A program made the position numbers and the translations under genes. A model generated the notes under the pieces. It saw nothing but the letters and a program-made list of their open reading frames with translations, was not told the DNA's origin and searched no databases. A stretch of 64,000 bases of DNA from Paraphysomonas bandaiensis (Eukaryota > Protista > Chrysophyceae): NCBI GenBank assembly GCA_965644295.1, contig CBFFRP010000378.1:310001-374000 (forward strand), written 5' to 3'. The stretch's first letter is position 1; each line of letters begins with the position of its first letter. This document shows positions 22,647 through 61,860 of the stretch, piece after piece.

Positions 22647-23183
22647 CCCTCAACAAAGTCGGATTCGCACCTTTTCATGGTGTTCTGCGGGATAAGTACC
22701 GGAGATATTTCTCCGGGAAACTAACGTGAGCCGCAAACATAGTCAGTAGATAGCGTTCTGCCCACTCATAGCCGAATGCTTGTGTGTTGTGTGGTACATG
22801 AGACACTAATAAGTGTGTTTAGGCCTTGACGAATAAACAGGCATCCGGAAAGGGGCCCACCTCAAGGGTATCCGGGACATGCTAAGGGTAACCGGGAGTT
22901 TGTTCACCTTAAGGACTCAAAAAACCTGAAGTCAGCAGATGTCAGGTGTACCAACATTCTGCTTGCTCATGGCGTTAGCATTGACGATAGGGCGGAGGTG
23001 GTTGCACCTTGGAGCTTGCGGCGCCCACAAGCAGTCTCCGTAGCGTTAAATAGTAGGATAATAGAGTTTGTACTAGTTGGTTACAGGTAGACGTTTATCT
23101 AGCTTGACTATTTTTCTTCTAGCTACTATAAACTGGTGTTGATTAGTAACGCCTATTGCTAATAATAAGACTTTTAATAATAA
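22647..23183 (+). mobile_element. Non-autonomous non-LTR retroposon, copy 1 (5' HDV-like ribozyme module)
   Basis: Starts CCCTCAACAAAGTCGG and ends gactttTAATAATAA. 10-bp TSD aagctatatg at 22637-22646 and 23184-23193. Homologous to five other loci in the window. Confidence 0.9.
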
Positions 23184-23784
23184 AAGCTATATGTGTGTAT
23201 ACGTTAGGGGACCACTATTTGACGCTAATATCATCAGTAGTGTGTGCGCGCGATATTGATGCATGAAGCAATTTTAAATAGCACTACCACGAAATATTCG
23301 TTTTGCCTTCACTTCTATTGCTGGCTTTCTGAATACCTTTCTGAACAACAATCTCATCCTAAAGATGCTAATGATTTGCACGCATAAACATCAACCACAA
23401 AATTAATGAAGTTAACTAATTAATAAATCATACCTCGCAGTGTTTCGGATCTTATCACTTAATACATAGTGCAGCGAAGTGGAACAAAAGACGTGATATA
23501 CATGTGTGCATTATACTTGTTTATATATTTAGTACAAAATATAGCTTGCACTAATTCAGTTTCGTATATTTTCAAGTTCTGCTGAAAGCAGACATACGCC
23601 GTAAAATATATCACCCACCCGTTACTTTTGGCTACACAAGTTCTCAGAATAGGTAGTGATTAAAATGACTGAAAGTACCATACTTATATGTTATACTCTC
23701 TATTTGCTAATATCAACCAATCTTCAATTAAGTTGTGAGTAGCCGATATATATCTACGCATACCACTTAATCCAACTCAACGCA

Positions 23785-25727
23785 TTAATTCTGCGCAGTC
23801 CCCTCCTCTCCGTCGCTACTGTCCTCATTATTCTCATCTACTTCTCTACTGCCTTCTGCGGCGCTAAACTTCTTTTCTGGATGTTTCAAGGGAGCAACAC
23901 CGAGTTTGACCAGTACCTTCTCAAGCTCCTCTTTGCCAATCTTCCCAGAGTTGTCAGTGTCGTATTCCTTAAACAGAGATTCAAGAGCCTCTCTATCGAC
24001 ATTGTAGTTCTTCTGGAAGCGCCTATCAGGTGACACGACACCATCCATAACTTCCTCGTCCTCTTCTGCGGCGAGATAACGACATAATCTCCAAGCAACC
24101 TACACGATGACCGCAGAGATCACAATGGCGATAAAACAAATTAGTATCTGACCTTTTGTACAAACTGTTCTGTAGTAAGCCCCTTGGGACCAGCCATATC
24201 ACGCGTTCCCTGACCGTAGCGGAAAGTGTTGTACACTGCTCGCCGCAAGTGACTAGTAAACTTTAAGACAGCATTTGCCGACTGCTTATCTGAAAAAACG
24301 TATTGTAAAATACCACACCTATACACATCCAATATGACAATACCTTTGCCGTCATATAAGCGAGCTGAATGCTCAATAGCACCTACAATGAAAAGATGTT
24401 AACAATCCCTGAAAATTCCAGGTGTATACACACCGATCAAAGCTTCAGTCAGTCCAAGAGGATTTAAACTGGTTTCTTCTCCACGTAAGTGAGCATGATA
24501 CAAATCTGTTACTGTGCCATGAGAGGCTTCGAATTCTAAACGAATACTTGACATTAAACTAATAAAAATTGTTCAAGACATATACCCCTAATCACCCTCC
24601 CATCTGCAGTGCGGCCAACAAGATTCGAGGTGATAAACCCAGGAGAGCGGTGCACCTAATAGCATATCAGACAGAAATAGAATATCACTGACTGTCACCG
24701 ACACTATATCGCATTGCAATAAGTATATCTAAGTCATATGTAATTTTACCTGAGCAATCTCATCTGTGAGCATATCACCATCATAATTATGTGCGGCCAT
24801 TCCAAACCCTCCCTTTGTCCAGCGAATGATTTGCATGGTAGCGGCATCAGAGATGAGATGTTCCAATTTGCCATCAGGAATGATTCCGGCTTCTTTAAAT
24901 TTTGCGCTATAGTGTTCATCGAATACCTCCTTCATTTTCACCCAAAACCCTTCTTGCCATTTGAAGACAGTCTTCTTCGTGACAACATAGGGCACAACCT
25001 TGGCTTCGAGGCACCTGCTAAAGAAATGGTGTGCCATCTGGGGAACATTATCCAACGGGTTATGATATGTGACTGCGACATTTTCGTTGTCACTCAAAAC
25101 TCGGTCATCCACAAACACGGGTGAGCTACCGTCATCCGGAAAGAAAAGAGTGAGTAAACGACCTGCACCCACTTGCTTCCACCCTGCCCCATACTCTCCA
25201 CCCACTGCATGCCTATCAAAAAATACAGGCTTCTGATATCCAAGCTCAACATCTGGAATATGGATAGTATCTCGCGAAATTGAAATACCATTCCAACCCC
25301 TGCGCATAATACCGTTGGGACTACTGAGGGGCCTCTTCAGACCAAACTCCTTCACTTGTTTCGCAGATGGGGTAATTGTTGGCTCTTTAAAAATTGCACA
25401 TATTCTAGCCCCAGCCTCAACTGCATCAACTAACACTTGATCGTCTGTATCATCTCTGACTTTGCAACTTAAGTCATACATTTCCCAACGTGATATATCT
25501 AAATGAGGTCTTATCCAGTGCTCAAGAATAAGTTCCATTCCATAACGAGTCATTTCTTCACCAGATATATACACCATAGGTGTTGCTGTAACTTTCTCAT
25601 GTCCCGGATATATGTATGGATGTGAGGGTTTGTAACGACTTGTTCTCATGAATGAATATGGGCGATATGCTGCATTACCAGCCCTCCTGCAGCCCACTAT
25701 TCGATAGTTTACTGCTCTGCTAAGCAT
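23785..25727 (-). CDS. IDH: Isocitrate dehydrogenase (algal/stramenopile homodimeric type) with C-terminal EF-hand and likely mitochondrial presequence
   Basis: ISGEEMTR, KEPTITP, SPNGIMRR, DRHAVGGEY, KKTVFK, HNYDGDMLTD, EASHGTV. C-terminal EF-hand FKEYDTDNSGKIGKEEL. Confidence 0.93.
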
Positions 25728-26413
25728 TTCAACAGATTACAGAAGTTTTCTTTATATATATACACTTTAATAACACTATCAAGTTGATGGTGTTTTGCAA
25801 AAGAGTTTAGCGGATGGAGTGACAAGTCTCTTCGCCACCGTTAATCCACCTGCATTTGTATGCGGCTACGGGCACTCTAGAATTCCTAGATTTTCAAGTC
25901 AAAATTACATGAAAATTCCAGTAGAATGTACACTTTCATCCATTTGGGGAATTAAAAACCTACCTTTTACTAAAATTAACCAGCTTTTTCCCTTATTCTC
26001 CTATTTTAAGGTTTTATGCGTTGAAAATGGAGGTTATAATCGTGAAATGGTAGAAAACTCTATTTTTTTGTACTGGAAATTCGTATATCGAACTAAAAAC
26101 CATTCTAGCCAGTAAATAACCTATAAAAGAGTATAGTGTAATATGATTCGTCAGTGAGGAAGTAAAGTCATCGAATGCAGCAAGCTAATCGTCATTACAA
26201 TGAGATACTATGAGTGTTCCATCATATGGATATGGTAAATCACTGGTATGGAGATATAGTACTCCTCCCATGATTATGTCCAACCATATCAACACATACA
26301 TGACATATGAAAGAATAAACTGTAATCAATATAACTATACTCGCCATCTATAATATCTATCCATATATATATATATAGTCATCTACTATAAAACTCATAT
26401 AGTAAATTATTAA

Positions 26414-29400
26414 ATGGGTATATCAACTAAAAGTAGAAAAGAAAATTCTCCTAAAATTCTATTAAATAAAGAAAATGAAGTTCAACATATACCAAAATTC
26501 ATATCTGAGAAACATGGAAAGAAAAAAAAAACTTCACCAAAGAAATTAAAGAAAGTATCTCTACAAGATACACTTTCTGAAAGTAATCATGAAGATGAAG
26601 TATTAATAAATCGTATTATAGCAACAAAAATGGCATTAAATGGTGGATTTGGTGTATATGATTCAAAGTTATGGACGACACCTATATGGACATTATGTAT
26701 ATATGTATCATCTACTTTAACAGATACATATATAGAACGTAATATATTACAACATTTAACAACAATATTACGTCATTATGGTAGAAAAAATAATATTGAA
26801 GTCTTATTTGTTGATATGAGATATGGTCTATATAATCAATATGATAAGAATCAGAATGTATGGTTTCATTATGAACGTGAATTACGACGATGTTATGAGA
26901 AATCATGTGGTTTATTCTTTTTAAGTTTACAATCATCTAAATATGGGTATATGCCATTACCTCCTATGATATCACGTGAATCATATATGAAACTATGTCA
27001 TGAATCTGATGAAGTAGCTCAAATTGCTGAGAAATGGTTTCAATTAGATGAAAATTCAATTCCACCACGATATAGATTATTACAGTCCAATGGAAATGAT
27101 AATTCTGATTTTCATGCGGTTATGCCTATCTTGCGTAATGCTCTTATTGGGCAACCAATGGTGTCTTGTGGGCTGGATAGTCGTCTTCTTATTGGATGTA
27201 GTGTATCTGAATGGGAATTGAGAACAGCGTTGTCGTTAGGTAAAAGTCGGTGCCTATGGTCTCACAGAGTGTTTTCGGACCTTCCCCCGATATCACCTGA
27301 CCATTCCCTGCAGCAGACTGAAACAACAGAAACGAATACGACAGCTGACGTCATTGAAGAACTTGTAGATGAGGTGCCAGACTTAACGGACTACCGGGAC
27401 ACTCAAGAGCCATCCATCAAGTTGAAGTATGACGAACTATTAAGTACAATGGAGCGAGATATTCCGGCTGAAAATATTATGAAATTCAATGTGACCTTAG
27501 AGGATTATAAGAAGTGTTCAGTTGATACAGGCGCCTATTCCATACAATGGGCGGATACTATTAAGCAGCGATTGTTACATGAAATGGATGCTGTGGTGAA
27601 GCAAAAAGAAGAATGGGACAAAAACGGCCTCGGCGTAATGATTGCTGGTAGAGAATTGCAAGAGATGTTGAGCCATCTCGAGCTAGCAAACAGCAAAAGC
27701 CAGTGTTTTGTTGGTAGAGAAGATCTCATTAAAACGGCAATGCAGATGCTTTATGCAGAGCAGAAAGTCCTACCGGAAACGTCAGCCCATGTGAGGAATA
27801 TACAACGCCTCTCTAGTCCAAGAAATGAAGATCCTACGAATCCATTCGGCATATGTTTTTGTGTAGTGGGACGCTCAGGAGCAGGAAAAACAGCGCTAAT
27901 GGCGAGACTTGCTGAGGAGGCATTTGAGGAGGAGTTCAAAATATGGGCTGTCAAATCACAAGCTTTGATACCATATAAGCCCCCACCGGTGGAAAGAGTA
28001 ATCGAGAAACGAAATATTTGCGAAGGTCTGCGTAGGCCAGTTATTATTCGATTCTGCGGGACCACCGTCGGAAGCTCTGATGGTTTTTCCCTCGTACAGA
28101 GTCTCGTTAGACAGATGCGATATTTATTTGACGTGAAAGATGGGCTCATTCCCAGCACCTTTGACGAGGCAACAAAGGAGCTGCACAAGCTCTTGCACAA
28201 TTATGCTGTAATCCTTTTTATTGATAGTCTGGATCAGTTGACAGATATGAATCTTGCCCGCAGTCGGATCAGCTTTCTCAAAGGATGTAAGCCTCATAAA
28301 GATACTCGTATTATTGTCTCAGCTCTTCCTGACGAACGAGATGAATCTGGCAAGGTAATATACTGGTATGGGTGCGACACAACTCTTGCGGCATCGCATG
28401 TCCCAAGGCTTAATGTGCCTTTCTTCGAGGTTGCTTATGGAGCAGAAGAGAGAGGAGGTACCAGTGCGAATCGCGTTCTTGAGTTTCTGCTATCGCCAAA
28501 ATATCGCCGCTTGACATCATCACAATGGAGTACTGTACTGGATATGGTTGATGTGGAACCTACAGCGCTGTATTTAAATCTCGCATGTAGAGTGATTCAG
28601 CACTGGAAGAGCTCGGATGAATCTGTCAGGTTAGAGCCAGGCGTTGTCGGAATTATCAATCAGATTTTTGATTATGTAGAAGAAGAATATGGATACAAAT
28701 TTTGCCGCCTTGCATTTGGAGTTATCACGTACTCTTGCTATGGGGTGACGAACAACGAGATGCTTGATATGTTGTCTTTAGATGATGATGTATTAGAAGA
28801 TCTTTTTCAAGATGCAAAGCCCCATGTGTATCGTGTACCAAGTCATATTTGGCTTCGGCTACGAGAGGACATGGAAGGCTTGATTCTAGAAGGTGATGGT
28901 GAGTGCTTCAGTTGGTATCACCGTCAACTACAAGAAACCGCGGAAATTCGATACGCTGATATAAAGTGCAAAGTGCATGCATTATTAGGAAACTACTTCT
29001 TGAACAACTTTGACCCGACATTTCACGTATCGAGACAAATTTCCCAGCAGCAACTTACGTTAACTCCAGAGTGTATTTGGATGGACGTGGCAGTCATCAA
29101 CAATAGACGTTGCTCAGAGGGTGCACACCACCTCATCGAGGCAGGACTTTATATGGAAGCCATCGATGAGTTGTGTAATTTTGAAGTTATATGTGCAGCT
29201 GCGAAATGTGGAGAAGGATTTCGTACTATCTCTCGCCTGACAAGACTTATGCAACTGGTTATGGCAGATAAAGGTGTTCATGTTAAAGTTGTTACGCGTG
29301 TAGAACATTACGTCAAATGGCTTGCAGAATCCATGCATGCTATACTAGAATTTCCTGTTGTGAATATATTTGTTACCGCATGTGGACAGCCACTGGAGTC

Positions 29401-32400
29401 TATAGTCCGCAAAGAAATGTTAGTGTACCTCAGTGAGCGTAGACAAAATCACGGTGGAATTGAGAGCTTCAAATCGAATTCGTGGGTGCAGTGTGTTGCG
29501 CTGGGTTGCAGTGCAACGTTCGGACCTCGTCGCTCGGTCTTGCTAGGTCATACTGATGTGGTTTGGTCCGTGGCGTGGAGTCCTGATGGAAATAAAATTG
29601 CATCTGGCTCAAATGACAGCATTGTAGGTATATGGGATCCCGCAACCGGTGAGCGGCTGCTGATGTTAGAAAAGCACGCGGATGCTGTGAACTGTGTTGC
29701 TTGGAATGCGACTAGTACTCTTATCGCCTCCGCCTCAAGAGACAACACGGTATGTGTTTGGGACATCTGTGCGGGTGGTGCCGTTTGCGGAATGTTTGAA
29801 GGGCACACTGATGAAGTGAATTCTGTGTGCTGGTCCCCTGCGGGGGATCTAATCGTATCAGGATCTGAAGACCGTTCAGTGTGCGTTTGGCATCCATGTA
29901 CTGGCGCCCTTGATGTGTCCTTCAAAGAGCATATCGGGGGAGTAGATGTGGTGGCGTGGAGCCCGTGTGGAAGGAAGATTGTATCGTCATCCAGAGATAC
30001 ACTGAGTGTGTTTGATGTATGTAGTCATACCACCTTGTATAGCTACTCCATTGCGGGGGTACATTCGCTGGACTGGAACCCAGACAGTTTCGAGCTTGTT
30101 ATGGGTCTCGAAGATCATATAATGTCAAAGGAAGTCAATAAGGAAGCGTGTTTTGATTGGAAAGTTAAAACCGATGTTGTTTGGTCGATTGCGTACTGTC
30201 CAGATGGTAGTCGTGTGGCCTCCGGATCAAAAGATGCACTTTTAAAAATGTGGGACCCCATTATTGGCCAAGAAATGTATACTTTGAAAGTACACACTGA
30301 CTCTGTACGATGCGTTTCTTGGAATCCTGATGGACGAATGATTGCTACTTCGTCGAGTGACAACACGATTTGTATCGTGGACACTACAGTTGGAGATTTG
30401 GACCCGAGGTCTACTGTTCATACGGACGTTATCACATGCGTGCAGTGGAGCCCTGATGGAAAGAAAATCGCCTCTGCTTCGGTTGATGGAACGATAAGAA
30501 TTTGGAATTCAACACAATACCTTTACTTATTATCACTGGAGGGTCATACCCGAGGAGTGACGGCTGTGTCTTGGTGCACCAACAGTCACCAGCTGGCTTC
30601 TCGGTCTCGTGATAAAACCATTCGAGTGTGGGATACTAATAGTGGCAAAGAACTTGGATGTACCACAGTCGGCTTGGTTGCGAAATACTCTATCGCCTGG
30701 AGCCCAGATGGCTCTACAATTTCGTGGATTTCACAGGAATTGTCTCTCAGTATGTGGAAGTTTGCTTCTGACGAAGTACCTGTTGTTATTACCATAGACT
30801 CATGGTGTGAGTATCCGCTGTGCACCAGTACAGATGAGATGGTATCTCGAGACTACTACTTCAACTTAGTAAAATCTGGAGAGAGTGTTCTTCTTGGCCA
30901 AATATCTTCAGTTACCTGCTCTCCTGATGGAAAGATAGCTACTGGCTTTTTATTTGTAGATCAATGGTCGATACGCATATCTAACGAGACGGGAAAGAAG
31001 CTGCGGACGTGGCCTGTCTGCGAGGGGGAAGATGGGCTTTTAGGAGCTGCTCAGGCAAATGCGAAGGTGGTTTTAGCATGGAGTGCGGATGGTACGAAAT
31101 TAGCATCTGGCGATATGACGAACAAAGTCCTTATCTGGAATTCTAATTCCGCATCAGTAGCTCTGAAAATAAAACTTCCATCTAGTGGAGTGAAGTGTTT
31201 ATCTTGGAATTATGATAACACAATGCTGGCATGTGGTATTGCAGAGTCTGTAAGCCTCATCAACCCAGCCTCAGGTGTTGTGCTGCGTACATTACAAGGA
31301 CACAATGGGGATGTGACATCCTTGTGTTGGAAACCGAAATCTCATTCCTTGGCTACGGGATCAAGTGATAAAACGATTCGAATATGGGATGCAGCAAGTG
31401 GAGAAGTCAGTGCTATTTTCGAGGGCCATACATCATGTGTGAACTCCGTTTGCTGGCACCCAGACGGTACTCTGCTTGCTTCAGGTTCCAGCGATAATTC
31501 CATATGCCTTTGGAATGATGGAGATGTTGTATGTACCCTGAATGGTCACTACGATGATGTGATAGCTGTCGCTTTCAGTCCAGGGGGCAGTATGCTGGCT
31601 TCGGCTTCGAAGGATTCGACATGTCGAGTTTGGGATACCTCGAATTCTAACTTGAAGGCCGTTTACGTAGGTCATACAGAGAGTGTTAACTTTGTGTCAT
31701 GGAGCCCTGAAGGTAACCACGTTATTTCTGGGTCAGACGACAAAACTTTCAGTGTATGGTGTCCTGATGTGGGCGTGAAAGTGAAATCTTTTTCTCTAAA
31801 TTCGCTGCAGACACTCAGACTATCTGTCACGGAGGAATCACGACCTATAATCAGTACAGACGGAAACCTGATATCAATACGCAAACGCTTTCTTGACACT
31901 ATGCGATGCTTGTCTTGGAGTCCAGATTGTAAAACTTTAGCTATCGGGGTATCCGGTGGGGACTTAGGATTTGTGTGCATAGTGGATAACGCAGGGACAG
32001 AAAAGGCAACATGGGCGACAGGAACTGATCATGTGCAGTCAATTGCTTACAGCCCCAATGGTCAAATGATTGCCACTGGTTCACACGACAATTCTGTGGG
32101 CGTATGGGATGCCGTATCTGGGGCGTCCCTTTGGAAAGTTCAGTGTCACACAGGAAGTGTCAACTGCGTTGCCTGGAGTTTGGATAGCCTAATGGTGGCA
32201 TCTGCCTCCAATGACAGTTGTATACGCATCTGCGATGCGTCCAATGGGCAACTAAAGTCTACTTTACGAGGCCATTCCGGCGCGGTTAATTCTGTGTCCT
32301 GGAGTCATGAAAGTGATTGTCTTGTTTCCGGATCCTCTGACACATCTGTATACGTGTGGATATCATGTACTGGAGCTAATCCAAAGCAAATGTTTGCGTT

Positions 32401-32404
32401 ATAA
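26414..32404 (+). CDS. NWD/TEP1-like STAND protein: DUF4062-like + NACHT NTPase + many WD40 repeats; single exon
   Basis: IYVSSTLTDTYIERNIL, P-loop GRSGAGKT, IIRFCGTT, Walker B LFIDSLDQL, WYHRQL, and repeated GH...V..VAWSPDG..IASGS.D..WD units. Confidence 0.92.
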   Translation: MGISTKSRKENSPKILLNKENEVQHIPKFISEKHGKKKKTSPKKLKKVSLQDTLSESNHEDEVLINRIIATKMALNGGFGVYDSKLWTTPIWTLCIYVSSTLTDTYIERNILQHLTTILRHYGRKNNIEVLFVDMRYGLYNQYDKNQNVWFHYERELRRCYEKSCGLFFLSLQSSKYGYMPLPPMISRESYMKLCHESDEVAQIAEKWFQLDENSIPPRYRLLQSNGNDNSDFHAVMPILRNALIGQPMVSCGLDSRLLIGCSVSEWELRTALSLGKSRCLWSHRVFSDLPPISPDHSLQQTETTETNTTADVIEELVDEVPDLTDYRDTQEPSIKLKYDELLSTMERDIPAENIMKFNVTLEDYKKCSVDTGAYSIQWADTIKQRLLHEMDAVVKQKEEWDKNGLGVMIAGRELQEMLSHLELANSKSQCFVGREDLIKTAMQMLYAEQKVLPETSAHVRNIQRLSSPRNEDPTNPFGICFCVVGRSGAGKTALMARLAEEAFEEEFKIWAVKSQALIPYKPPPVERVIEKRNICEGLRRPVIIRFCGTTVGSSDGFSLVQSLVRQMRYLFDVKDGLIPSTFDEATKELHKLLHNYAVILFIDSLDQLTDMNLARSRISFLKGCKPHKDTRIIVSALPDERDESGKVIYWYGCDTTLAASHVPRLNVPFFEVAYGAEERGGTSANRVLEFLLSPKYRRLTSSQWSTVLDMVDVEPTALYLNLACRVIQHWKSSDESVRLEPGVVGIINQIFDYVEEEYGYKFCRLAFGVITYSCYGVTNNEMLDMLSLDDDVLEDLFQDAKPHVYRVPSHIWLRLREDMEGLILEGDGECFSWYHRQLQETAEIRYADIKCKVHALLGNYFLNNFDPTFHVSRQISQQQLTLTPECIWMDVAVINNRRCSEGAHHLIEAGLYMEAIDELCNFEVICAAAKCGEGFRTISRLTRLMQLVMADKGVHVKVVTRVEHYVKWLAESMHAILEFPVVNIFVTACGQPLESIVRKEMLVYLSERRQNHGGIESFKSNSWVQCVALGCSATFGPRRSVLLGHTDVVWSVAWSPDGNKIASGSNDSIVGIWDPATGERLLMLEKHADAVNCVAWNATSTLIASASRDNTVCVWDICAGGAVCGMFEGHTDEVNSVCWSPAGDLIVSGSEDRSVCVWHPCTGALDVSFKEHIGGVDVVAWSPCGRKIVSSSRDTLSVFDVCSHTTLYSYSIAGVHSLDWNPDSFELVMGLEDHIMSKEVNKEACFDWKVKTDVVWSIAYCPDGSRVASGSKDALLKMWDPIIGQEMYTLKVHTDSVRCVSWNPDGRMIATSSSDNTICIVDTTVGDLDPRSTVHTDVITCVQWSPDGKKIASASVDGTIRIWNSTQYLYLLSLEGHTRGVTAVSWCTNSHQLASRSRDKTIRVWDTNSGKELGCTTVGLVAKYSIAWSPDGSTISWISQELSLSMWKFASDEVPVVITIDSWCEYPLCTSTDEMVSRDYYFNLVKSGESVLLGQISSVTCSPDGKIATGFLFVDQWSIRISNETGKKLRTWPVCEGEDGLLGAAQANAKVVLAWSADGTKLASGDMTNKVLIWNSNSASVALKIKLPSSGVKCLSWNYDNTMLACGIAESVSLINPASGVVLRTLQGHNGDVTSLCWKPKSHSLATGSSDKTIRIWDAASGEVSAIFEGHTSCVNSVCWHPDGTLLASGSSDNSICLWNDGDVVCTLNGHYDDVIAVAFSPGGSMLASASKDSTCRVWDTSNSNLKAVYVGHTESVNFVSWSPEGNHVISGSDDKTFSVWCPDVGVKVKSFSLNSLQTLRLSVTEESRPIISTDGNLISIRKRFLDTMRCLSWSPDCKTLAIGVSGGDLGFVCIVDNAGTEKATWATGTDHVQSIAYSPNGQMIATGSHDNSVGVWDAVSGASLWKVQCHTGSVNCVAWSLDSLMVASASNDSCIRICDASNGQLKSTLRGHSGAVNSVSWSHESDCLVSGSSDTSVYVWISCTGANPKQMFAL

Positions 32405-33498: not shown

Positions 33499-33502
33499 TC
33501 TA

Positions 33503-37778: not shown

Positions 37779-37950
37779 TTAAAGTCTTATTATTAGCAGT
37801 AGGCGCCAAGAACCAACACCAGATAAATAGTTTGATGAAGACTAGTCACGCAAGGTCGACCACATATCTGTAACTAGCACAATTCTCATATCTTACTATG
37901 TAGCGCTACAGAAGCTGCTTGTGCGTCGCCGCAAGCACCAAAGTGCAACC
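37779..37950 (-). mobile_element. Retroposon copy 3: 3' module only, joined to unrelated GC-rich upstream sequence (to ~38430)
   Basis: Reverse complement of ggttgcactttggtgcttgcggcgacgcacaagcagc...gcctactgctaataataagacttt. Confidence 0.8.
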
Positions 37951-39582
37951 GTTTCCGTTCTTGTGTGTGAGGGAGAAATTCTCTGTGGGGGTTAGTCCTT
38001 GAAATACAGAAGGATCAGTCAGGGGGGCGCCCCTTAGGGTAGGGCTCCTCAGGACTTTGTGGAGGAGGATTCTGTATCAGTGAGTCTAGTGTCCTTAACC
38101 GAAGATACATAGACGAAGGGGTGTCTTAGAATGGCTCCAGCTGCGAGTTGGGCCTGGGGAAGAGGAGTAGCTGACGGAGTTGGCATCGTGGCTTTTCTGC
38201 TGAGGCGGGGTGGTGGAAGAGGAAGACGACTGAAGGGGCGCGTTAGGTCTCCGCTTTACACGTAGTAAGCGTAGAACCCGTGGCTTCCGCTGGGTATTGC
38301 TCGATTTTAATCGTGTATTGCCGCATTTTGCCGACTCTGCCAGCTGGGGGAAAACTGCCGACTCCGCCATGCTCTTTTGTATGTTGCTTCATGTGTGAGA
38401 TTTAGGGGGAGTCGTTGTGACCCCTTAGGGTTGACAGCATAATGCACACTACGATCTTGGAGCATTTGTTTGGCTGCAGCGTAAAGCGGTTGAAAGAGGG
38501 CAATACATATCTTACAGCCTCATTCGAGCGTACTAATGTTGTTGTTAAACTAAGCAATGCATAGATTTATTACAATCCCGACATATCCTTTGTGTTTGGT
38601 CCCAAGAAAGCTCCAGAGAGATATACACTATACTTGCATCTTGCATAGTCCTTACAATTACGCTAATCCAATAACATGTTAGGCTTTTACTGAGTCATGC
38701 ATGGTCATAAGAAACTCCATGTAGTCTTTGTTAGGGGATGGGAAAGTGAACATGACGATAATAAATCTGTCGACTTACATACATAAGTCATGCAAAGTTA
38801 TGAGAGCACGGAATCTTTGTGAAGGCGAACACGGATGGGGAAGTAGGGTGGCTTCTGCAGAATCTGCGTGCAATTTATATGGTCAGCAAAGTTGGTAAAT
38901 GGGTGAGTGAATGCGTCGAATCAGCGCAAAGTCTTGGTGTTATAAGTGGTGTACTGACGTGCCTTCACCCTACACTATGGCCACATTGCACACTGTCGCA
39001 TTGAGGCACTTGCATACCTCGGAAGTGATATTCATGTGCAAGTATCGAGTATCATTTGTGACTTTTTCTAACCCAAAGATAACTACTAGGCTGAATCGTG
39101 TATTATTATCACGAGGCAAATCCAATAACAACTATATCGACGTTTTACACCAGCCATGTAAACTATAGCTCACTAATTCATCTCATAATCAGTATAGGAT
39201 ATAGGATACCCCAACAAATTTTTATATATGCAAGAAATTTTTATTTACTGTTTCAATGAAATTGATATTAAAAGGTTGAAAAAACAAAAAACCGTGCAAT
39301 CTAGTATTCCAAGATGCACAGGCATGCAACCAGGTGTATATAAAACTGAGTGTATACAATATATAATGATAGTGATTGTGGTGACGCATGTTTCGACAAA
39401 TACTGACGACAACATTTCACTCAATCAAATTGGTCGTAAAAAAGGCATAATTGAAATACGCAAAATAATAGTAATCTGAAGAGTGAATAAAAGCCCCTTA
39501 AACGGAGTGTGCAGAAAGTGGTCGGCGGCTCCTCCAACAACTGCATAAAATATAGATTCTACTTATGTAGATTCATGGGATC

Positions 39583-40946: not shown

Positions 40947-41612
40947 ATGAAAATCTACAATATATTCATATATAAAGGGTACAGTATGAGGTGTACTGTA
41001 TGTACATACCATGATAAGCATATGTATTGACAGCAGTAGAGTTAGTAGTAGGATTAGTATGTCCTTTCTTCATATATTCACGTTTTCTTCTACAGTGAGT
41101 GATGTTTCCCTTTAAGATATGAGATAAGAGGGTCAGATATGTGTATATTATACCAGAGTATCGACGTGATCGACTATACCCTCTTGACCATATATATGGC
41201 CAGAATGAGAGGTATGAGAGGTCGAGTAATGTCGAGATTGACGAGGTAAATACATTTCAGTGTGCATAACAATAAAATAATGTTAACAATGTCTTAATCT
41301 TCATACAATATACATATGAAGAATCATGTTCATCTATATATATATATTCCCATATAGTGTTGACACTATGACTCTATCACAGTACGTACAATTGTGAAGT
41401 GTTTCTATATTTTATTGCTTACGTACTTCAATATTCCAAATATTTTGAGTATCTTCAAACAATATTTTACTGAAAAAGTTTTTCCCTTCAACCCACTATA
41501 GCTAAAAATCAGAGAATATAAGAGAAAAAACAGGAATTTTTCTATGAAATTTCAATTTTTATGTACTAATTTTTTTTGACTATTTAGAAAGTTCAAAGTG
41601 TTGTTGCGTCAG

Positions 41613-41783
41613 GGGGTGGTTGTGCATATCGATTTTATCCATTTTTTCATCGTTTATTTCATTGAAAAGTCATCGTTTTTTCAGTGAAAAGTGAAAAAAA
41701 GTGACTTTTTAATGAAAAAACGATGACTTTTCAATGAAATAAATGATGAACAAATCGATAAAATCGATATGCACAACCACCCC
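41613..41783. mobile_element. Palindromic MITE, PIF/Harbinger-like
   Basis: Long TIRs GGGGTGGTTGTGCATATCGATTTTATC / GATAAAATCGATATGCACAACCACCCC. 3-bp TSD CAG at 41610-41612 and 41784-41786. Confidence 0.85.
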
Positions 41784-42840
41784 CAGTTCATGGAATATTC
41801 ATACTCCATGGTACTCATCATCACCAGACTCTCTGTGGTGGTGAAGTGCTACGTAGTACTCATCACCAGCAGTATATACTCTGTATACCTCCCTGTAGAC
41901 AACAGTGCTGTACACGCACTCTATGTACATACAGCATCAGGAAGGAAGATCTTCACATACTGGCTGTACATACTTCACATTTAAAGAACACTCTTCATAC
42001 ATAAAACTCCACTTCCACTTCCCTTCCCACCTATCCACACTCCTTTGACATCATCATCAGCAACATACATAGACATAATACTCACCACTGCATATATACA
42101 TACATGTATATGCGTATGTTTACTATGATATCTCTCTCTATATCCATATATCCATATGTATGATCCAGTCAAGTATATAGTTCAAAAGATGTTCCATTAA
42201 ACTATATATAAGTCATTAGAGACAATCATACTATCCTTATTAGCATGAAGGTACACTGTATTGTTCTACTGTAACAGTATATGATCATATACACGGTGAT
42301 CTGTGATGGTAGCTATATCTGGACCTCTAGCAGCAATATATGGCTGTATGCTATACACTGGATACTAAATACCACATACACTTTCCCATATGGTGCATTA
42401 AGCGCTACTGGAATACTACTGTAGCTACTGAAACTGATGTTGGCTATACAGAGAAACTAATTCAGTCAGCTCTAAAAATGAAGGAATAAAAAGTTAAAAT
42501 ATCTCAGTACGAGTATAGTAGTATAAACTTCCAATACATATGAACGCCTGTAAAGCTCAATTAAACTTATTATCTCAGTGTAGCGCAAAAGTATACATCC
42601 TGTTGCTTATATGCTGTTGTGACCGGATGTATGGATATTTCAATAAATTTTGAATATATTCACTATTTCTTGGTAGAAAAATCAACAGTTTACTAAAGTA
42701 AAATCTATTATCGTTCACAGTATTTTGTGCTTTATATATACTTACAATAGTAGATTTTACCATTTCAATGTCTGTCTACATAGCACTACTAATACAATAA
42801 TTATATCATTACTTGCTCACTGGACGCCCGCACAATAAAG

Positions 42841-43970
42841 CAGGGCTAGGAAACAATATAGTGCAATACTATTGTTAGTTAGCGTTCCATCAATACTATT
42901 GATGGAGATTTTAAGCAGGCTCAACAATACAATTACAATATATTGCAATATATTAGTATGACTAATCAGTAAGTAAACACATCCGTAGATTCCATATTTA
43001 GCATTAGTCATTAAGATCATGTGGCAACCATACCCACAACTTCTTATAGCTAATAAAAATCCACCTCGTTCTCATCCTCTGAGCCATCATCGCTGACGTC
43101 AACATCACCATATTCATTCAAAATTAATTCTTAGGCTGCTTAAACTTTATTCAATAAAGTTACACTGCTAACTGCATGACTGGGATACATATCTACTGAT
43201 ATCTACTTATTACTTATACCAACTAACAAATATTTATACTTTGCTGAATGCTGAGGGTAGTAACAAACACCTGTGGCTATTCAAACGGTTCGTACTAATA
43301 TATTAGATGAAGTGCATTGTAGATATCCAAACACCAAAACAATAATTTTGCTGCGGACGAGAGAATTCAAGCAGGTTTTAGGAAGTATACTTAACGTATA
43401 ATGAATTTAATATTTATTTAGTGGGTGACGTACATACATAATATAGAGTAGATCAGGACCTCGTAATATCGATATAATCAGCATTAATTGTTGGAAACTA
43501 GGATCCAATTAAATTGAATTAATAGAAATCTAATTGCTCGCTGGAAGGTTTAATTATATTGCTATTAATTGGAAATTATTTCTCATATACATATACAACA
43601 AAACCCATATTAATATGATAGGATGTGCTTCGCACAAACTGAACTTAGCTGTGCTTCTATATTATGGTGAAGAGCATTTTCCTGGGGACTGGTGGATACC
43701 ATTACCAAATTGTGCAAAAACAGCTCCGCACAATGAAAAATGCAAGCAAATTGAGGAAACATGACTTGTCATATGTGGTCTTGTGAGGAATGACACTCGA
43801 TGGGTATACCGCTGTTTGAAGTACTACTAGTTGTGTAGAAAGGCTTTTCCGTGGAGCAAATATCAACATAAGTGATCTACGCAAATCCATGGCATCTCAT
43901 CAATTGGAGGCCCTAATGTTCTTGCGCTTCAAAAGACTTGTGTGAAATGCAAGTACAGTTGAAGATGCTA
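42841..43970 (+). mobile_element. Decayed hAT DNA transposon with transposase relic
   Basis: TIR CAGGGCTAGGAAACAATATA, shared with the MITE at 60438-61860. Relic peptides IGCASHKLNLAV, VRNDTRW and STTSCVERLFRGA...LEALMFLR (hAT dimerisation-like), interrupted by stops and deletions. Confidence 0.8.
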
Positions 43971-44058
43971 TACGTGCTTGTAATGAATAGCTAATTTAAT
44001 TAGACAATGATTGGCAATTGAAATACAATACAATTTTACTAATATATACTTATCGTCA

Positions 44059-44147
44059 CCCTCAACAAAGTCGGACTCGCACCTTTTCGTGGTGTTAAGG
44101 GATATAAGTACAGGAGAGATTCTCTCTGGGAAACTAACGTGAGCCGC
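44059..44147 (+). ncRNA. Candidate HDV-like (L1Tc/ingi Pr77-like) self-cleaving ribozyme at the retroposon 5' end
   Basis: P1 CCCTCAAC/GTTAAGGG; P2 CTCGC/GTGAG; P3 ACC/GGT with L3 TTTTCGT; P4 hairpin flanked by AGTA/GAA; J4/2 CTAAC. P1 and P1.1 are imperfect. Confidence 0.65.
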
Positions 44148-44563
44148 AAACATAGTCAGCAGATATTCTTCTGCCCGCTCAGAGCCGAATGCTTGTGTGG
44201 TACAAGGTACACCAATAAGTGTCACTTGTGTAGACGTCTTTGGGCCCTGACGAATAAACAGGCATCCGGAAGTGGGCCCACCTCAAGGGCATCCGGGACA
44301 GGGCCCACCTGAAGGTAACCGGGGTATTGGGCTGCCTGCTGAAGTCAAGCATCCGGGATGTTCACCTTAAGAACTCAGAACTGAAGTGGTTGCACCTTGG
44401 TGCTTGCGGCGACGCACAAGCAGCTTTCGTAGCGTTAAATAGTAGGATAATAGAGTTTGTACTGATTAGTTACAGGTAGAGGTCTAACTAGTTTGTCTAG
44501 CATTCATCTAGCTACTAAATCGGTGCAGGTTTTTAACGCCTATTGCTAAATAAAAGACTTTCA
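44059..44563 (+). mobile_element. Retroposon copy 4 (best-defined, 505 bp)
   Basis: Runs CCCTCAAC...gactttca. Perfect 15-bp TSD atatacttatcgtca at 44044-44058 and 44564-44578. Confidence 0.95.
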
Positions 44564-44589
44564 ATATACTTATCGTCAATCGTTTTTAC

Positions 44590-48398: not shown

Positions 48399-48419
48399 AT
48401 ACAGTGAATGATCAGTGTT

Positions 48420-52671: not shown

Positions 52672-53091
52672 TTGCTTCACCATCATAAATACATTTTGTT
52701 CTTCGAGGTTATCTCAGTTCTCGAATGAGTTTTATTACAATGGTTTCGTCGATAAGATATACTCGTAATTAATTATCTCTATGGGATAAAGGATAAAGTA
52801 CGACTGTTGCTAATTCTTTCATCATGCTATTCGGTAAATTGCATAGAATTACAACTGCAGGTAGCATTGGCTCTCCTCTGACTATATCGGAAGCTGAACT
52901 TACCACTCCGTGTCCTTCGGTAATCTATGCATCAGGTCTAATACTCACAAACTAAATTTTATCAAACTACACGGAGAATATACAGCCATTTTCTTCGTAA
53001 AATACTATGCTACGCACAAACTGTGATATTCTTATTATGACTCTAAGTGTGATACTTTCACATTATTGTAAAATGAATGCAGTAAAAAATA

Positions 53092-56000: not shown

Positions 56001-56565
56001 ATATAATCATACGTATCATACGTTGTTTTCTATAGTATTTCCAACGTTTATACCATAATTGTATAAATAAAATATTCTTTCTATTATGACAATATTGTTT
56101 ATAATTCATATATGATCGTATATAACTTTGTAATACTATACAACTATATTTATATTTATGATACAATACTCTCATAGTATATTGACGATAATAAGATTGT
56201 ATTCTTATAATTGATTGTATTCTATAATAATATCTACGTATAATATATTGACGATATGTAGATTGTATGATACAACATGATTTAGTATATTGTAGATATT
56301 GTTTTTGTATATGATATCTTCGTATATGTGATTGTATAAGTATTATAGCATTATATATATGTATTTTTTTGGTATGATATTTTCGCCATATTCTTTGTAT
56401 TAATAATGAAGATGAAGTATGAAGTGAAGTATGAAGTGAAGTAGAATTATTTTCATAGAAATTTCTTGTAATTCTTCGACGTGTAAGTAAACCTTTTTGA
56501 TGTATTATATATAATGCTAAAGTAATATTGAAATGGATTACTCCAATTCCCCATCCAATATTCAT
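53092..56565 (-). CDS. Multidomain protein: IQ repeats, ankyrin, PH, ankyrin, AIDA-type C2-like, SAP-like tail
   Basis: Many IQSxxRxY motifs; SPLHIA/GNTAAHYA; IMEGWLMK..WKQVWAILT..LHYF..ELQKWMISI; GQTALHISV; FPYLTVSLY..QTPLENL..FVLIELR; MRISELK..VEKSEF. Confidence 0.8.
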
Positions 56566-57133
56566 TAAAATATCCAGTTTTTCAATATAGTTATATATTT
56601 CGAAGAGTATAGAAGTTAATAAGAATGATATTAAATTGAGTGATTTGAGATATATATGATTCGTATGAATATGCCGATAGGGGTTCTTCTTTCAGGTCAG
56701 ATTTGTGAAGAAGATATGCTTATTTGTCGATATATATATATATGTATGCTATCATACTATCATACCCTTTGAAGGTATCTACTTCTATGTTGAATATACA
56801 GCATTACAAGTACATGCATGACACACATCTATACATCTCATCAAGAATACGTACCGGAATACTGACTACTGGAAATACTGCTGTATAGAAGCAGTAGTAC
56901 GATAAACTGTTCTGCTGTATTCCAAGTAAGTATTCCACCGTATACCATGGTATACCAACATCAGTCGCCAAAAAACTGGCGATGAGCATACATAAACATA
57001 CTACTGAATATATATATGCATGGGAGCGAAGCTATCATAGAGAGTGCAGTGCTATTATTGCTTATACTTAACAACTGTGTGTTTGTTACTGATTAACACG
57101 TAGGATTTATATTGAAATAATTGTTGGCCCATT

Positions 57134-58785
57134 ATGTCATATAAAATGCGTACAGTTCTCGTCCAGAGAAATATCTGGAGTGCATCATCAGCAAATGAAC
57201 ACTTTAACGACAGGCAAGGGAATGAACAGGTACTTGTACTCACTTATCCTAACAAACATCTTCATTACTTGCAAACAGTGCATTGTTCTTGTCCCTCGGC
57301 CTCCTGTTTTTCCACAACTCTTCTTTACTGTACCTGCGGGTCCATATGTATTGTGGCAATCATGGGGAAAAAATCGTGGGTTACTGTTGCCTGGACTCAA
57401 ACTCTGCTGGGCACCCTGGCACCGTGTTAGTCATATTGTAACGAGAGCAGCAATTACTTATGATGCCCCGACTTATAATGTGCCAACAGCAGACAATGTC
57501 ATGGTAACTGTTGATGTGTCTCTTACGTTCTCCATATCTGGTGGTGAGGACGCTGCGTCAGACTTCGTGTACAAGATCGGTGCATATAATTTTAATGACT
57601 ATCTCTCTTCTAAAACAGAGGAAGCTATACGAGGACTGGTGTATGGAGTAACTCATAACAAGGTCAATGACTTAAGGGAAGAATTCGCCGTATCTATGCT
57701 CGAAAGCCTCAAGTCTAAAATGATGGAATTCGGTGTTCGCATGATGAATGTGAAGGTTAGTTAAGATGTTGTAAAATTATTTAGTCAAGCTGATGTAATG
57801 TGATACGTTATCTAGGTAACTGACGTGAAGCTACCACCAGATCTGCAGTCTCGTCTTGAGAAGACAACCGCATTCCAGACCAAAATAGAGGAAGCTGCGG
57901 TATGAACACTATTGTCGGTGTATGCAGTAATGCCATGTAGCGTAATGTTGTGCACTACGTACTTTGCGTCTTCTATCCTACGTAACATTTGTGTTCAACA
58001 GAAAACGCAAGAGAACAAAAAACTCCTAATTGAAAACGATTCTGTTAAGAAAATCGAAGCTTTACGGAAAGAAAATCACCGCAAGCTTCAAGACCTCAAC
58101 GCAGAATGCCAACGATTCGAGATCGAGATGAGAGAAATGGAAGACGTTCAGAGAGGCGAGAATAAGGTAGGCAAAAAGGGCAGTAAGAATTGTGCGCCTT
58201 ACCTATCTCGTATGTAGGTTTTGGAAACCAAACGAAGAGCTGCCGCAGAGACTCGTATTACCAAAGCGAAAGGAGACAAGGACATTGCTACATCTCAGGT
58301 TAGTGTGACATTTGTGTGTGCTGAAACATGGCACACGTGTAGTATTGTTATTATAAAACCGCTTGTTACAGGGCCAGCGTGAGGCCGAGGAACTTCTTAG
58401 GAGTACAACAATTCGCTGCGAGGCGATGAAAATCAAAGCAGACCAGGATTACTCTACAATGGTGATGGCTTCAAAATCACGTTTAGCTGCGGCTAAAAAT
58501 ACCGCGGAAGGTAATTCAATTCTTTGTAAATTTTGTTGAAAATGATAAGAAGTTGTGTGAAATTGTATGTGTACTAATATTTTATTAATAGGAATGATTG
58601 CAACTGCTCAAGCCGAAGCCGCGGCGGCAGAAAAACTTAGAGAGAAGCGTAAATATGAAATTGAATGGAAGCGATTGGCTGTTATGGAAGAAATAGCAGG
58701 AAAAGGAAGAAGAGTTATATCTGGTAATGCTGCTGATGGTCTGATTGAACAAATAGTAGAATCTGGCCTAAAATCCGGCGCTTAA
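57134..58785 (+). CDS. SPFH/Band-7 (stomatin-like) protein with coiled-coil C-terminus, multi-exon
   Basis: PGLKLCW, VPTADNVMVTVDVSLTF, EEAIRGLV, FGVRMMNVK|VTDVKLP; AEAAAAE coiled coil. Confidence 0.88.
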
Positions 58786-58975
58786 AAATCAGAAGATCAC
58801 ATCAATGACTAAAATGTGATTATACGTTAGGATAAGTAATAGTTTGGTCGGATTAGGTGTTTTACGAATTGTCTCACATTGTTATTATGAAAATCAAGTT
58901 AAAAAAGAAGATACTGTGTTTTTATGTGACTGATTTTAATTTCTAGGACTATGAAACGTAGAATTCATAAAGTAG

Positions 58976-59451
58976 TGAATGTCCTACTATTAGCAACAAG
59001 GGTTTAAGAGACAGAACTAATTTAGCAGTGCAATTTAACTAACTCTGATATCGTACTGCTATTTAACGCTACGAAAGCTGCTTATGCGTCACATAAGCAC
59101 CAACGTTGCAATCACTTTTGCTCTATACTCAAAGCAAACGCAGCGAGCAAGCAGAATGTTGATACACCTGACATTTCGCTGACTTAGAGATTTTTGATCC
59201 TTAAGGTGAACAGCCCGGCAGGCAGTCCAATATCCCGGTTACCCTTCACGTGGACCCATTCCCGGTTGCCTGTTTATTTGTCAAGGCCCAAAGGCGTCTA
59301 CACAAGTGACACTTTTATATTAGCGTCCCTTGTACCACACAAGCATTTGAGTGGGCAGATCTAAATCTGCTGACTAGTTTTCAGGAGAAATATCTGCGGT
59401 ACTTATTCCCCGGAACACCGCGATAAGGTACGAGTCCGACTTTGTTGAAGG
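58976..59451 (-). mobile_element. Retroposon copy 5 (diverged)
   Basis: Reverse complement runs ccttcaacaaagtcggactcgtaccttatcgcggtgttccgggg...gctaatagtaggacattca. No long TSD visible. Confidence 0.88.
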
Positions 59452-60437
59452 TAGTAGTCCTATTACAAGATATATTATAGTCTCAATACTTACATGATTG
59501 TGAGGTTCAACACAAATATACTCCTGAATATATAAATTGTTGAGAACCATTACCTGATAGTTAAAAGATGTCATCGTGTTTGAGTAAAAATCTTGATGTA
59601 AACGAGGCGGTACCGTAAACACCTAGTCATATGTTGTTGTCAACTAGATTTTTATCTAGTTGACAAGAGTTATATACATACATACACAATATTTCGTTAC
59701 AAGCTAATTTAATCAATTTTACTAACGAATCTATTGTAATCCTTGTGTAAGCTACAAGCTATAGGCAGTCATTTAATTGATAGACACTGTAGCAGTTGAG
59801 TTTTATATTATACAGGCAGGAGACTAAAGAAGAAGAGAGTGTGTTGTGTATATGAAGAGCTACAAGCCTGGTATACGATTAGTGAGTATCATTGTTCAAC
59901 CAAGTGATACGGGAATAATGTAAGAATTAAAATTTACTCGTGTTACGTATGGAGAAAGGGTGGTGCGGGTACACCACCTAGATTGATTGTTTGAACTTAT
60001 GTGTTTGTCGGGTACCATATAATTAACAGTCTCCCTAACTAATTACTAAGCACCATACAAATAATAATTTGACGAGAGTAATATACTACAATATGAAATA
60101 TATAGAGATGAACCTTTATTTAGACTAGTAGGTTCGCGAAATTCATTGGAACACTCACCAGATATTTTATACACTAGCTCAACATCTCTCTTAATTATCA
60201 GCTACGGAAGTAATGTTTGTGTATGTTGGGTAACGTGACATTGCTTATGTACAACCGAAAGAGATGTTTCCATTGAATATTAAGTCATTCCAGAACATAT
60301 TAGATGAAAGGTTATAGAAGTATTATTTAAACTGTCGAAAGAGTTCACCATGAAGTTACAATTCTGCTTATTTGAAATTTTCTATTATCTAGCTCCCAAA
60401 TGATCTTACCTAGCAAGATCTAGCTAGCCGTATGTAG

Positions 60438-61860
60438 CAGGGCTAGGAAACAATATATTGAATTACAATACATTGATTGGTCGCCCTCAACAAAGTCGGA
60501 CTCGCACCTTTTCGTGGTGTTCTGGGGGATAAGTACCGGAGATATTTCTCCGGGAAACTAACGTGAGCCGCATATTATATAGTCAGCAGATATATTGTTC
60601 TGCCCACTCATAGCCAAATGCTTGTGTGGTACAAGGGACACTAATAAGTGTCACTTGTGTAGACGTCTTTGGGCCCTGACGAATAAACAGGCATCCGGGA
60701 ATGGGCCCACCTCAAGGGCATCCGGGACAGGGCCCACCAGAAGGGTAACCGGGGTATTGGGCTGCCTGCTGAAGTTAAGCATCCGGGATGTTCACCTTAA
60801 GAACTCAAAACACCTGAAGTCAGCAGATGTCAGGTATATCAACATTCTGCTTGCTCCCTGCGTTTGCTTTGAGTGATTGATGCTGAGTATGAGTTCACAT
60901 TATTCGGTATCTGTGTGGCCGGCCAATGACCGAGGTAATGCGTCAAACTTTCCTCATGGATGCATGGCAATGGCAATGATGTGATTAGACCTGTCATGTC
61001 TTCTCACACGTCTACTGCCTAGTCTTGGTTTCTCCTGACCCAGGTCATTGAGATTATATCAAGGCTCTGGCACTGTTCTCCAAGCAGTGTCAGGTACATT
61101 TGTGGTGCTTTTATGTTATTCTTGCTTAGTAGGTTTTCATCCGAGCGGGGAAGGTGCACGGTTTCCTACTAGTGTAAGTCACTCGGGAGAAGAGTGCAAG
61201 GTGGATGCATGTGCTGGATGAGTGCACACAATGGAGGGAAGACATTGGAGTCAGCTTGAATTTGTAACAGATTTTGGTAGATGTCTGTTTCATGCGTCAG
61301 TGTGCAAAATTGCACCAGTGAGACCGCTTCGTGACCGTGGGAGGACCCGGCGCTATAGCTACTTTATTCTCCCTTCCAGACTACCTGCTGCTGTGAACAC
61401 CACCTTGAAGAGGGCCCTAAAGATCTGCCGCATATACAGGAGACATATGCCGAAGACACCGACCGCAAGTTGTTTGTGTTAGGACAAGTAGATTGGGCAG
61501 GAGCGTATGATCCGGCTTAAACACGCAACTCGTCGTATGCCCATGTAGCTAACTAAATCGTGTTGTATAGTTGAGCACTTGTCGGTGCATGCAATAGTAA
61601 CTAGATGAGAGTCATGTTATGCATAGTGTCGCGCGAGTTGTTAGGTTGGTCGCGGCAACGCACAAGCTTGCGCTTCTTAATAATCAGATTTTCAATACAT
61701 TGATTGGTCGACCGGCCAAAAATCCTATCAATATTGTTTCTGTTAAAGTTGCTCAAAATATATTGTAATTGTACTGTTGGGCCTGTTCAATATCTCCATC
61801 AAAAGTATTGTTGGAGCGCTCTCTAACAATAGTATTGCAATATATTATTTCCTAGCGCTG
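60438..61860. mobile_element. hAT MITE interrupted by retroposon copy 6
   Basis: TIRs CAGGGCTAGGAAACAATATATTG / caatatattatttcctagcgctg. Perfect 8-bp TSD gtatgtag at 60430-60437 and 61861-61868. Confidence 0.92.
60484..61694 (+). mobile_element. Retroposon copy 6, long (~1.2 kb) variant nested in the hAT MITE
   Basis: CCCTCAAC start and cagattttca end. TSD (ca)atacattgattggtcg, 16-18 bp, at 60466-60483 and 61693-61710. Carries ~0.78 kb of extra internal sequence. Confidence 0.92.

Follow-up and report, generated by a model that had tools for sequence, protein, structure and literature searches.

What fixes the first base of a short, non-coding repeat that occurs several times within a single stretch of a protist genome? 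The 64,000-nucleotide stretch analyzed here (the window, positions 1–64,000, taken from a contig of Paraphysomonas bandaiensis) holds five copies of a repeat resembling a short interspersed nuclear element (SINE), found at 22647, 33076, 44059, 58976–59451 and 60484, where a preliminary description of the sequence had placed them. As that description had also stated, every copy begins at CCCTCAAC or a one-base variant of it. We conclude that this SINE-like retroposon is real, abundant and recently active. On balance it is probably a retroposon without long terminal repeats (non-LTR), about 505 nt long and accompanied by a sister family of 1.2 kb, in which a head derived from a ribozyme of the Pr77/L1TcRz type is followed by a body and by the tail of a long interspersed nuclear element (LINE), and which spreads by target-primed reverse transcription (TPRT). 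The features of the window on which the argument draws are listed below; element base 1 is the first base of each copy, TSD stands for target-site duplication and HDV for hepatitis delta virus, and P, L and J denote the paired, loop and joining regions of the HDV-like fold.

22647–23183, plus strand: SINE-like copy, older, 74% identical to a young copy overall and 94% in the head; TSD AAGCTATATG.
33076–~33499, plus strand: SINE-like copy, older, with an internal deletion; head 92% conserved, P3 damaged (GGT to GTC).
44059–44563, plus strand: SINE-like copy, full length, 505 nt; TSD ATATACTTATCGTCA at 44044–44058 and 44564–44578.
44059–44147, plus strand: head of the 44059 copy, predicted Pr77-type HDV-like fold with P1, P2, P3, L3, P1.1, P4 and J4/2; 30.1 bits (model R1) and 35.7 bits (model R2).
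44134, plus strand: candidate catalytic C of the 44059 copy, element base 76.
44373–44563, plus strand: putatively LINE-derived 3′ tail module of the 44059 copy, its sequence shared with the LINE.
44397–44423, plus strand: stem-loop motif TTGGTGCTTGCGGCGACGCACAAGCAG in the tail of the 44059 copy.
44535–44549, plus strand: terminal 15-mer AACGCCTATTGCTAA in the tail of the 44059 copy.
58976–59451, minus strand: SINE-like copy, decayed; a deletion took J4/2 and the 3′ strand of P2 from its head, which both covariance models leave undetected.
60484–61694, plus strand: sister element of 1,211 nt, with the same head at 60484–60572 (the best model match), about 390 nt of SINE body and a different 3′ part of 830 nt ending in AGATTTTCA.
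37779–38503, minus strand: complete copy of family B (about 720 nt), which has only a tail of about 185 nt in common with the SINE (76% identity) and is without the Pr77-type head.

Two details of the earlier picture have changed. A copy size of 0.4–0.55 kb does not hold for the copy at 60484, which is the sister element, and what had been taken for a 3′ part of the same repeat at 37779 on the minus strand is really a complete copy of another family. The three TSDs first described are exact at the lengths given: 10 bp for the copy at 22647 (AAGCTATATG, at 22637–46 and 23184–93), 15 bp for the copy at 44059, and 16–18 bp for the element at 60484 (ATACATTGATTGGTCG, at 60468–83 and 61695–710).

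The same hallmarks recur throughout the genome, for which counts were taken over 62.5 Mb in 669 contigs. With the 44059 copy as query there are 3,630 first-look candidates, the best 40 of which are full length and 93–98% identical. A 27-nt head motif has 1,328 matches and a 27-nt tail motif has 1,779, against none for the reversed-pattern control in either case, and by these motif counts the copy number is about 1,300–1,800. In 22 of 33 further distinct genomic copies of full length an exact TSD of 7–18 bp lies directly at base −1, and most of the others have a TSD with one mismatch. Base −1 differs between copies, while the start stays constant at CCCTCAAC or its one-base variant; the 3′ ends of SINE copies read ...GACTTTCA and then run into a short AT/TAA stretch. 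TSDs of variable length, the lack of long terminal repeats (LTRs) and of terminal inverted repeats, and a 3′ tail in common with a LINE are the marks of TPRT. Together with the fixed 5′ end and the TSDs at base 1, they bear out the initial view of the element as a non-autonomous retroposon of the TPRT type. At three loci (L005, L026 and L002) one SINE copy has inserted into the head of another and is flanked by clean TSDs; insertion of these elements into one another is frequent.

Not all parts of the element are equally conserved. In old subfamilies the head retains 90–99% identity without indels, while identity is 83–90% with large gaps in the body and 64–86% in the tail; such retention in old copies is consistent with the head having been under selection in the master copies. 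Assemblies labelled as RNA, which carry three organism labels, also contain the element, as does one polyA marine metatranscriptome, with coverage confined to the element, although these data are assembled Logan contigs, from which RNA starts, ends and cleavage cannot be read.

What, then, is the head? It comprises bases 1–89, with the TSD adjoining base 1, so that its Pr77-like signature lies at the extreme 5′ end of the element. Pr77 ribozymes that cleave in vitro have been described from L1Tco/NARTco(78), TvSIDER1(94) and Li/LmSIDER2A(81) (PMC4035085). A side-by-side comparison by eye of published Pr77 sequences with the SINE head reveals common blocks, namely a CCCT start, CACCT-N3-CGTGGT, AGTAC and GGAA-N-CTAA, and all 24 core bases specified in these blocks are common to the head and the published active ribozymes. 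In the head and in published Pr77 alike, C-ACC-U is the end of P2 and the 5′ strand of P3, a 7-nt L3 ends in CGU, GGU-G provides the 3′ strand of P3, AGUAC precedes P4, and GGAA-N-CUAA after P4 holds the candidate catalytic C, with the 3′ strand of P2 coming next.

The SINE head is predicted to fold in HDV order as a nested double pseudoknot of P1, P2, P3, P1.1 and P4. Predicted P2 has 8 bp (C22–G81 to C18–G85, A17 bulged, G16–C86 to C14–G88), and conservation of the head ends immediately after it. P3 would pair bases 23–25 with 35–33 (ACC/GGU), P1.1 would be the single pair U28–A46, as in 16 of the 17 environmental members introduced below, and P4 would have 7–8 bp, beginning from bases 53–59, with subfamilies that vary in G·U versus G–C and by the gain or loss of whole pairs. 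Both L3 (UUUUCGU) and J4/2 (GAAACUAAC, with the candidate catalytic C76) are invariant or nearly so in 30 aligned heads. P1, as predicted here, consists of C1–G45, C2–G44, C3–G43, U4·G42 and C5–G41, a bulge of C39 and U40, and then A6–U38, A7–U37 and C8–G36. Other registers are continuous, with either 6 bp and a 4-nt linker or 8 positions including two mismatches; the register given in the preliminary description (bases 1–8 with 43–36) leaves U4·U40 and C5·C39 unpaired and makes the spacer 5 nt long. Because an 8-bp P1 with a 2-nt bulge would be continuous with P3, would restore the 3-nt spacer of the class (AUA) before AGUAC and would make the P1.1 pair U28–A46 possible, it appears to be the better reading of the modeled helix. 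Accordingly revised are the P1 register, the length of P2 and P1.1, which had been drawn as two G·U pairs; the blocks, the helix order and the catalytic C of the layout first proposed for the initial ~88 nt are retained. The 44059 copy has four private changes in the 3′ strand of P1 (44097, 44098, 44102 and 44103), at which nearly all other copies have C, T, G and G.

Environmental sequences provide further evidence that this type of head is a structured RNA. We used a core pattern, CACCT N3 CGTGGT N8–14 AGTAC N12–40 GGAA N CTAA, which was drawn from the SINE head and the published active Pr77 ribozymes, has 24 fixed bases and no expected chance match in the window, and leaves P1, P2, P1.1 and P4 unconstrained. 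A single metagenome scan with this pattern returned 25 contigs with 17 distinct sequences. They include six fully complementary 7-bp P1 types (CCCCAGC/GCTGGGG, CTGCTTC/GAAGCAG, CCCTAGC/GCTAGGG, GGGCGAC/GTCGCCT, CCCCATC/GATGGGG and CCCTCCC/GGGAGGG) and at least seven P2 helix types. The 5′ strand of P1 was picked as the best complement within 40 nt, where a perfect 7-mer is expected by chance about 0.03 times per sequence, and the strands so picked all fall in one alignment register. P1.1, between L3 base 3 and the first base after P1, is U–A in 16 cases and G–C in one; in published Pr77 sequences the pair is A–U (PMC4035085). Over the 17 sequences, 96% of the cells of the double pseudoknot are paired, compared with 40–52% (about 45%) in slid controls, both-sided changes occur in 17 of 21 pairs, and the covariation score is 0.669 versus 0.186 in shuffles, with none of 500 shuffles reaching the observed value. 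Unaided, RNAalifold recovers P1, P3 and P4 from the environmental alignment. In three environmental groups the upstream sequences are unrelated and the homology between copies begins exactly at P1 base 1, and on one contig (L065) open reading frames (ORFs) for APE and reverse transcriptase (RT) lie downstream of a Pr77-type head; the RT of this environmental LINE has no relative in the P. bandaiensis genome at E≤1e-5. Pairing, covariation, the start of homology at P1 base 1 and the downstream APE and RT together indicate that the motif class is a genuine HDV-like fold at the 5′ ends of retroelements. On six of the contigs (L066, L068, L069, L073, L074 and L078) the ribozyme with P1 CTGCTTC/GAAGCAG has A-rich flanks conserved on both sides across samples, and in this it resembles an orthologous locus or tandem unit more than a dispersed 5′ end.

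Two covariance models, R1 (P1+P3+P4) and R2 (P2+P3+P4), were built solely from the environmental sequences, and each detects four of the five window heads. R1 scores them at 37 (60484), 30.1 (44059), 25.9 and 19.1 bits, and R2 at 44 (60484), 35.7 (44059), 34.1 and 28.1 bits. Applied to 258 kb of genomic loci, R2 finds 45 heads and nothing besides. We consider it very probable that the head and the Pr77-type ribozymes are homologous. Self-cleavage by the master sequence is a less secure prediction of the structural model, to which we give a somewhat better than even chance.

A ribozyme-derived head would provide a simple explanation for the fixed start. We propose an element of three modules: an 89-nt head that would be a member of the Pr77/L1TcRz type or a close derivative, a non-coding body that tolerates indels, and a tail of about 185 nt that would have been copied from a LINE. 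Transcription might take place within longer host transcripts or from an internal RNA polymerase II (pol II) promoter of the Pr77 type with a downstream promoter element (DPE). The head would then fold as a double pseudoknot and cut just 5′ of C1, so that every RNA, and hence every new DNA copy, would start at the same base. The RT of the LINE would recognize the stem-loop tail, whose sequence the two elements share, whereas the insertion itself is seen to be by TPRT into a staggered nick, which leaves the observed TSDs of 7–18 bp.

Several observations weigh against this proposal, in particular against its catalytic step. The 2-nt bulge in P1 (or the two mismatches) of the SINE occurs in none of the 17 environmental or the published Pr77 members, the segment from the 3′ strand of P3 to AGTAC is 13 nt long in the SINE versus 10 in the class, and L3 is UUUUCGU in place of UCUACGU or UCAACGU. 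Pr77 variants with "adequate folding" can be inactive, and cleavage was almost lost with a single mismatch in P1 (PMC4035085). Rfam gave nothing relevant, either at gathering thresholds for the window or at E≤10 for the element. The model scores are partly circular, since the pattern by which the environmental sequences were found came in part from the SINE head. Covariation, which had been suggested as a check, is found in the 17 environmental class members, whereas the SINE copies, being 92% alike, carry no covariation information of their own. Some of the RNA-labelled contigs cross the −1/+1 junction, and therefore uncut RNA or contaminating DNA must be present. Finally, the conserved CGTG could reflect a promoter role instead of catalysis. 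Plain minimum free energy folding of the head (z = −0.74) is weakly informative for a pseudoknot.

This last idea can be extended to the head as a whole, which might descend from a Pr77-type ribozyme but now have, as its main or sole role, that of an internal core promoter for pol II whose CGTG is DPE-like, the start lying at +1 and the bulged P1 representing catalytic decay. The corresponding 77 nt of L1Tc have pol II promoter activity, for which CGTG at +25 to +28 is essential, and the SINE head has CGTG at +30 to +33. Transcription starting at +1 would be just as good an explanation of the fixed 5′ end, every subfamily has an imperfect P1, and the inactivity of some well-folded Pr77 variants (PMC4035085) would be in keeping with a head that no longer cleaves. 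However, a DNA promoter needs no RNA helix between +14 and +88, and yet masters whose sequence has changed in other places retain the pairing of P2 up to base 88, P1.1, C76 and the L3 core; moreover, promoter activity has been demonstrated in trypanosomes only. We therefore regard a purely or mainly promoter role as a serious but minority possibility, roughly one chance in a few, and self-cleavage by a Pr77-type head as the preferred explanation.

The other end of the element points to its partner. From near element base 315–326 onward, the SINE is homologous with family B and with numerous tail-only fragments. Tail-only matches were considered as candidate LINE 3′ ends, and all 12 that were fetched proved to be SINE variants. 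An RVT_1 scan of the genome, on the other hand, contains one group of matches 879–885 nt long, at about 60 bits, in ORFs that reach 3,021 aa. Four LINE copies of that RVT_1 group (C11, C15, C25 and C28) could be tested, these being all that lie on contigs for which motif positions were listed, and each has the exact 27-nt tail motif on the same strand as its RT domain and 2,383 nt downstream of it. The terminal 15-mer AACGCCTATTGCTAA follows the tail motif at 137 nt in the LINE versus 138 nt in the SINE, and an APE domain lies in the same giant ORFs, about 1.37 kb upstream of the RT. This link rests on the coordinates of domain and motif matches and not on the letters of the LINE sequence. The shared spacing in the tail, together with APE and RT in these giant ORFs, indicates as the partner a very large APE-RT LINE with a single ORF. 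A genome scan with Pfam RNase_H (PF00075) gave two matches only, neither of them in the tail-sharing LINE. The tail of the SINE is thus apparently derived from a giant APE-RT LINE without a Pfam RNase H. The APE-RT LINE with a common 3′ terminus that the preliminary description envisaged does exist, with tail motifs at matching spacing in all four copies, but there is no support for its being the Ingi/Vingi-like mobilizer suggested there. On contig C37 (30140–45771) the terminal 15-mer of the SINE and LINE tail occurs five times on the same strand, every ~3.9 kb, which suggests a tandem array containing the tail.

The existence of a partner LINE raises another explanation, in which the head is a conserved piece of the 5′ untranslated region (UTR) of an autonomous LINE, serving ribonucleoprotein assembly or translation, and the short elements are internal-deletion derivatives in the manner of RIME/NARTc, for which no catalysis would be needed. 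Such deletion derivatives are the norm in ingi/RIME and among R2 SIDEs, and an origin of this kind would suit two short families that have different 3′ parts and one head. Yet the head motif was not seen at the 5′ sides of the LINE copies checked by coordinates, the full-length copies C440, C433 and C143 lying outside the contigs so covered. The single head near a LINE, 8.4 kb upstream of the RT in C25, was considered as a LINE 5′ end and belongs to an adjoining 1.2-kb element. Furthermore, a Pr77 core with the canonical 10-nt spacing has only two matches in this genome, both of them deletion variants of the SINE. We accordingly consider a LINE 5′ UTR improbable as the source of the head, and a classical SINE transcribed by RNA polymerase III (pol III), with a head from a tRNA, 5S, 7SL or snRNA gene, highly improbable: most SINEs are so built and the 5′ end is precise, but the element has no Rfam match even at E up to 10 and no similarity to tRNA, 5S or 7SL, ARAGORN finds no tRNA in the window, and the head shows neither an A box nor a B box.

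The head is not confined to the SINE. The sister element at 60484 has the head and the first ~390 nt in common with it, and the sister family numbers at least 40 genomic copies with 97–100% identity over 815 nt; its own tail motif has 119 genomic matches. Given this near-identity, elements with exactly this bulged head must have moved very recently. An autonomous partner of the 1.2-kb family was sought through the occurrence of its tail motif near RTs; one RT match (C373) has the motif 3.3 kb downstream, and the others do not. For family B there are 128 first-look candidates in the genome, and its copies start with (G)CCCTCTTTC; family B and the SINE both begin with CCCTC. The start of family B was considered as an HDV-type head, but its layout is a misfit by eye, and neither R1 nor R2 gives a match.

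How does this element compare with known systems? The closest likeness is with NARTc, RIME and SIDER1-2, which are short, non-coding, TSD-flanked and very abundant non-LTR retroposons, the first 77–94 nt of which are an HDV-like ribozyme set to cut at base 1 (PMC3185411, PMC4035085). The element described here resembles them by sequence and predicted fold, through the blocks CCCT, CACCT-N3-CGTGGT, AGTAC and GGAA-N-CTAA and the single-pair P1.1. Unlike these elements, it resides in a silica-using protist rich in LTR retrotransposons, not in a kinetoplastid; its 3′ end is a structured LINE tail with TTTCA and an AT run instead of poly(A); its P1 is bulged and its spacer segment 3 nt longer; and its partner would be a giant APE-RT LINE with no RNase H match, with which only the sharing of the tail is seen. 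The R2 SIDEs of Drosophila likewise have a 5′ ribozyme that sets the RNA start, and at the 3′ end they carry the protein-binding tail of autonomous R2, but they arose from R2 by deletion, insert specifically into 28S rDNA and have another HDV-like subtype, whereas the present element is dispersed and has variable TSDs (PMC3414825). With classical LINE-tailed SINEs it has in common the composite of head, body and partner-LINE tail and subfamilies that keep the head and swap tails; in contrast to theirs, its head is unlike any pol III gene and would be a ribozyme/promoter module of retroelement type. In Schistosoma, self-cleaving ribozymes (hammerhead or twister-variant) are found at the 5′ ends of non-LTR retroposons, some of them SINE-like (Sm-alpha, Perere-3 and SR3), although both the ribozyme class and the host lineage are different (PMC8501958).

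A full-text literature search turned up ribozyme-headed non-autonomous retroposons for trypanosomatids, Drosophila R2 SIDEs and Schistosoma only, and none for stramenopiles, in agreement with the preliminary description, according to which no such family is known to have been described in this lineage. The placement outside trypanosomatids is likewise upheld by a host genome with several silicon-transporter genes and many copia and gypsy-type LTR elements. Ribozyme-headed non-LTR retroposons have been documented chiefly from three groups: trypanosomatids with Pr77, insects with R2, and flatworms. The occurrence of a young and highly abundant family in a free-living, silica-using protist, together with a covarying environmental set, suggests that the Pr77-type module is distributed far more widely than its name implies. 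It is conceivable, though we hold it only tentatively, that the Pr77 promoter-ribozyme is a widespread 5′ cassette of eukaryotic retroelements and not a trypanosomatid invention, captured here by short elements with tails from head-less LINEs. If so, there would be a class of SINEs in which a self-cleaving ribozyme/pol II head replaces the pol III gene and the tails are swappable between LINE partners.

The new results are an environmental class that covaries, a model of P1 with a bulge, a sister family of 1.2 kb and a link by coordinates to an APE-RT LINE lacking RNase H. The near-identical 1.2-kb copies offer a tractable system for finding out how the 5′ ends of retroposons are set, by self-cleavage, by internal promotion or by the two together, and the bulged P1 is a natural probe of the tolerance of the HDV fold. 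The core pattern together with R1 and R2 can be used to annotate a ribozyme subtype that Rfam does not detect here.

The window contains several other features. A copia-type LTR retrotransposon (RVT_2, gag, integrase SH3) occupies 5219–10679; its 300-nt LTRs are identical, and the element is therefore young. A dispersed repeat of ~105 nt is present at 42832–42944 and 61757–61869 in inverted relative orientation, as well as at loci L001, L009, L024, L030, L054 and L058, and may be a family resembling miniature inverted-repeat transposable elements. At 41612–41784 there is an inverted repeat of 81 nt, whose arms are 94% complementary and lie 11 nt apart; one of them occurs again 25 kb off at 16764–16830. 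Lastly, an ORF of 1,996 aa at 26414–32404 encodes at least 14 WD40 repeats forming several beta-propellers.

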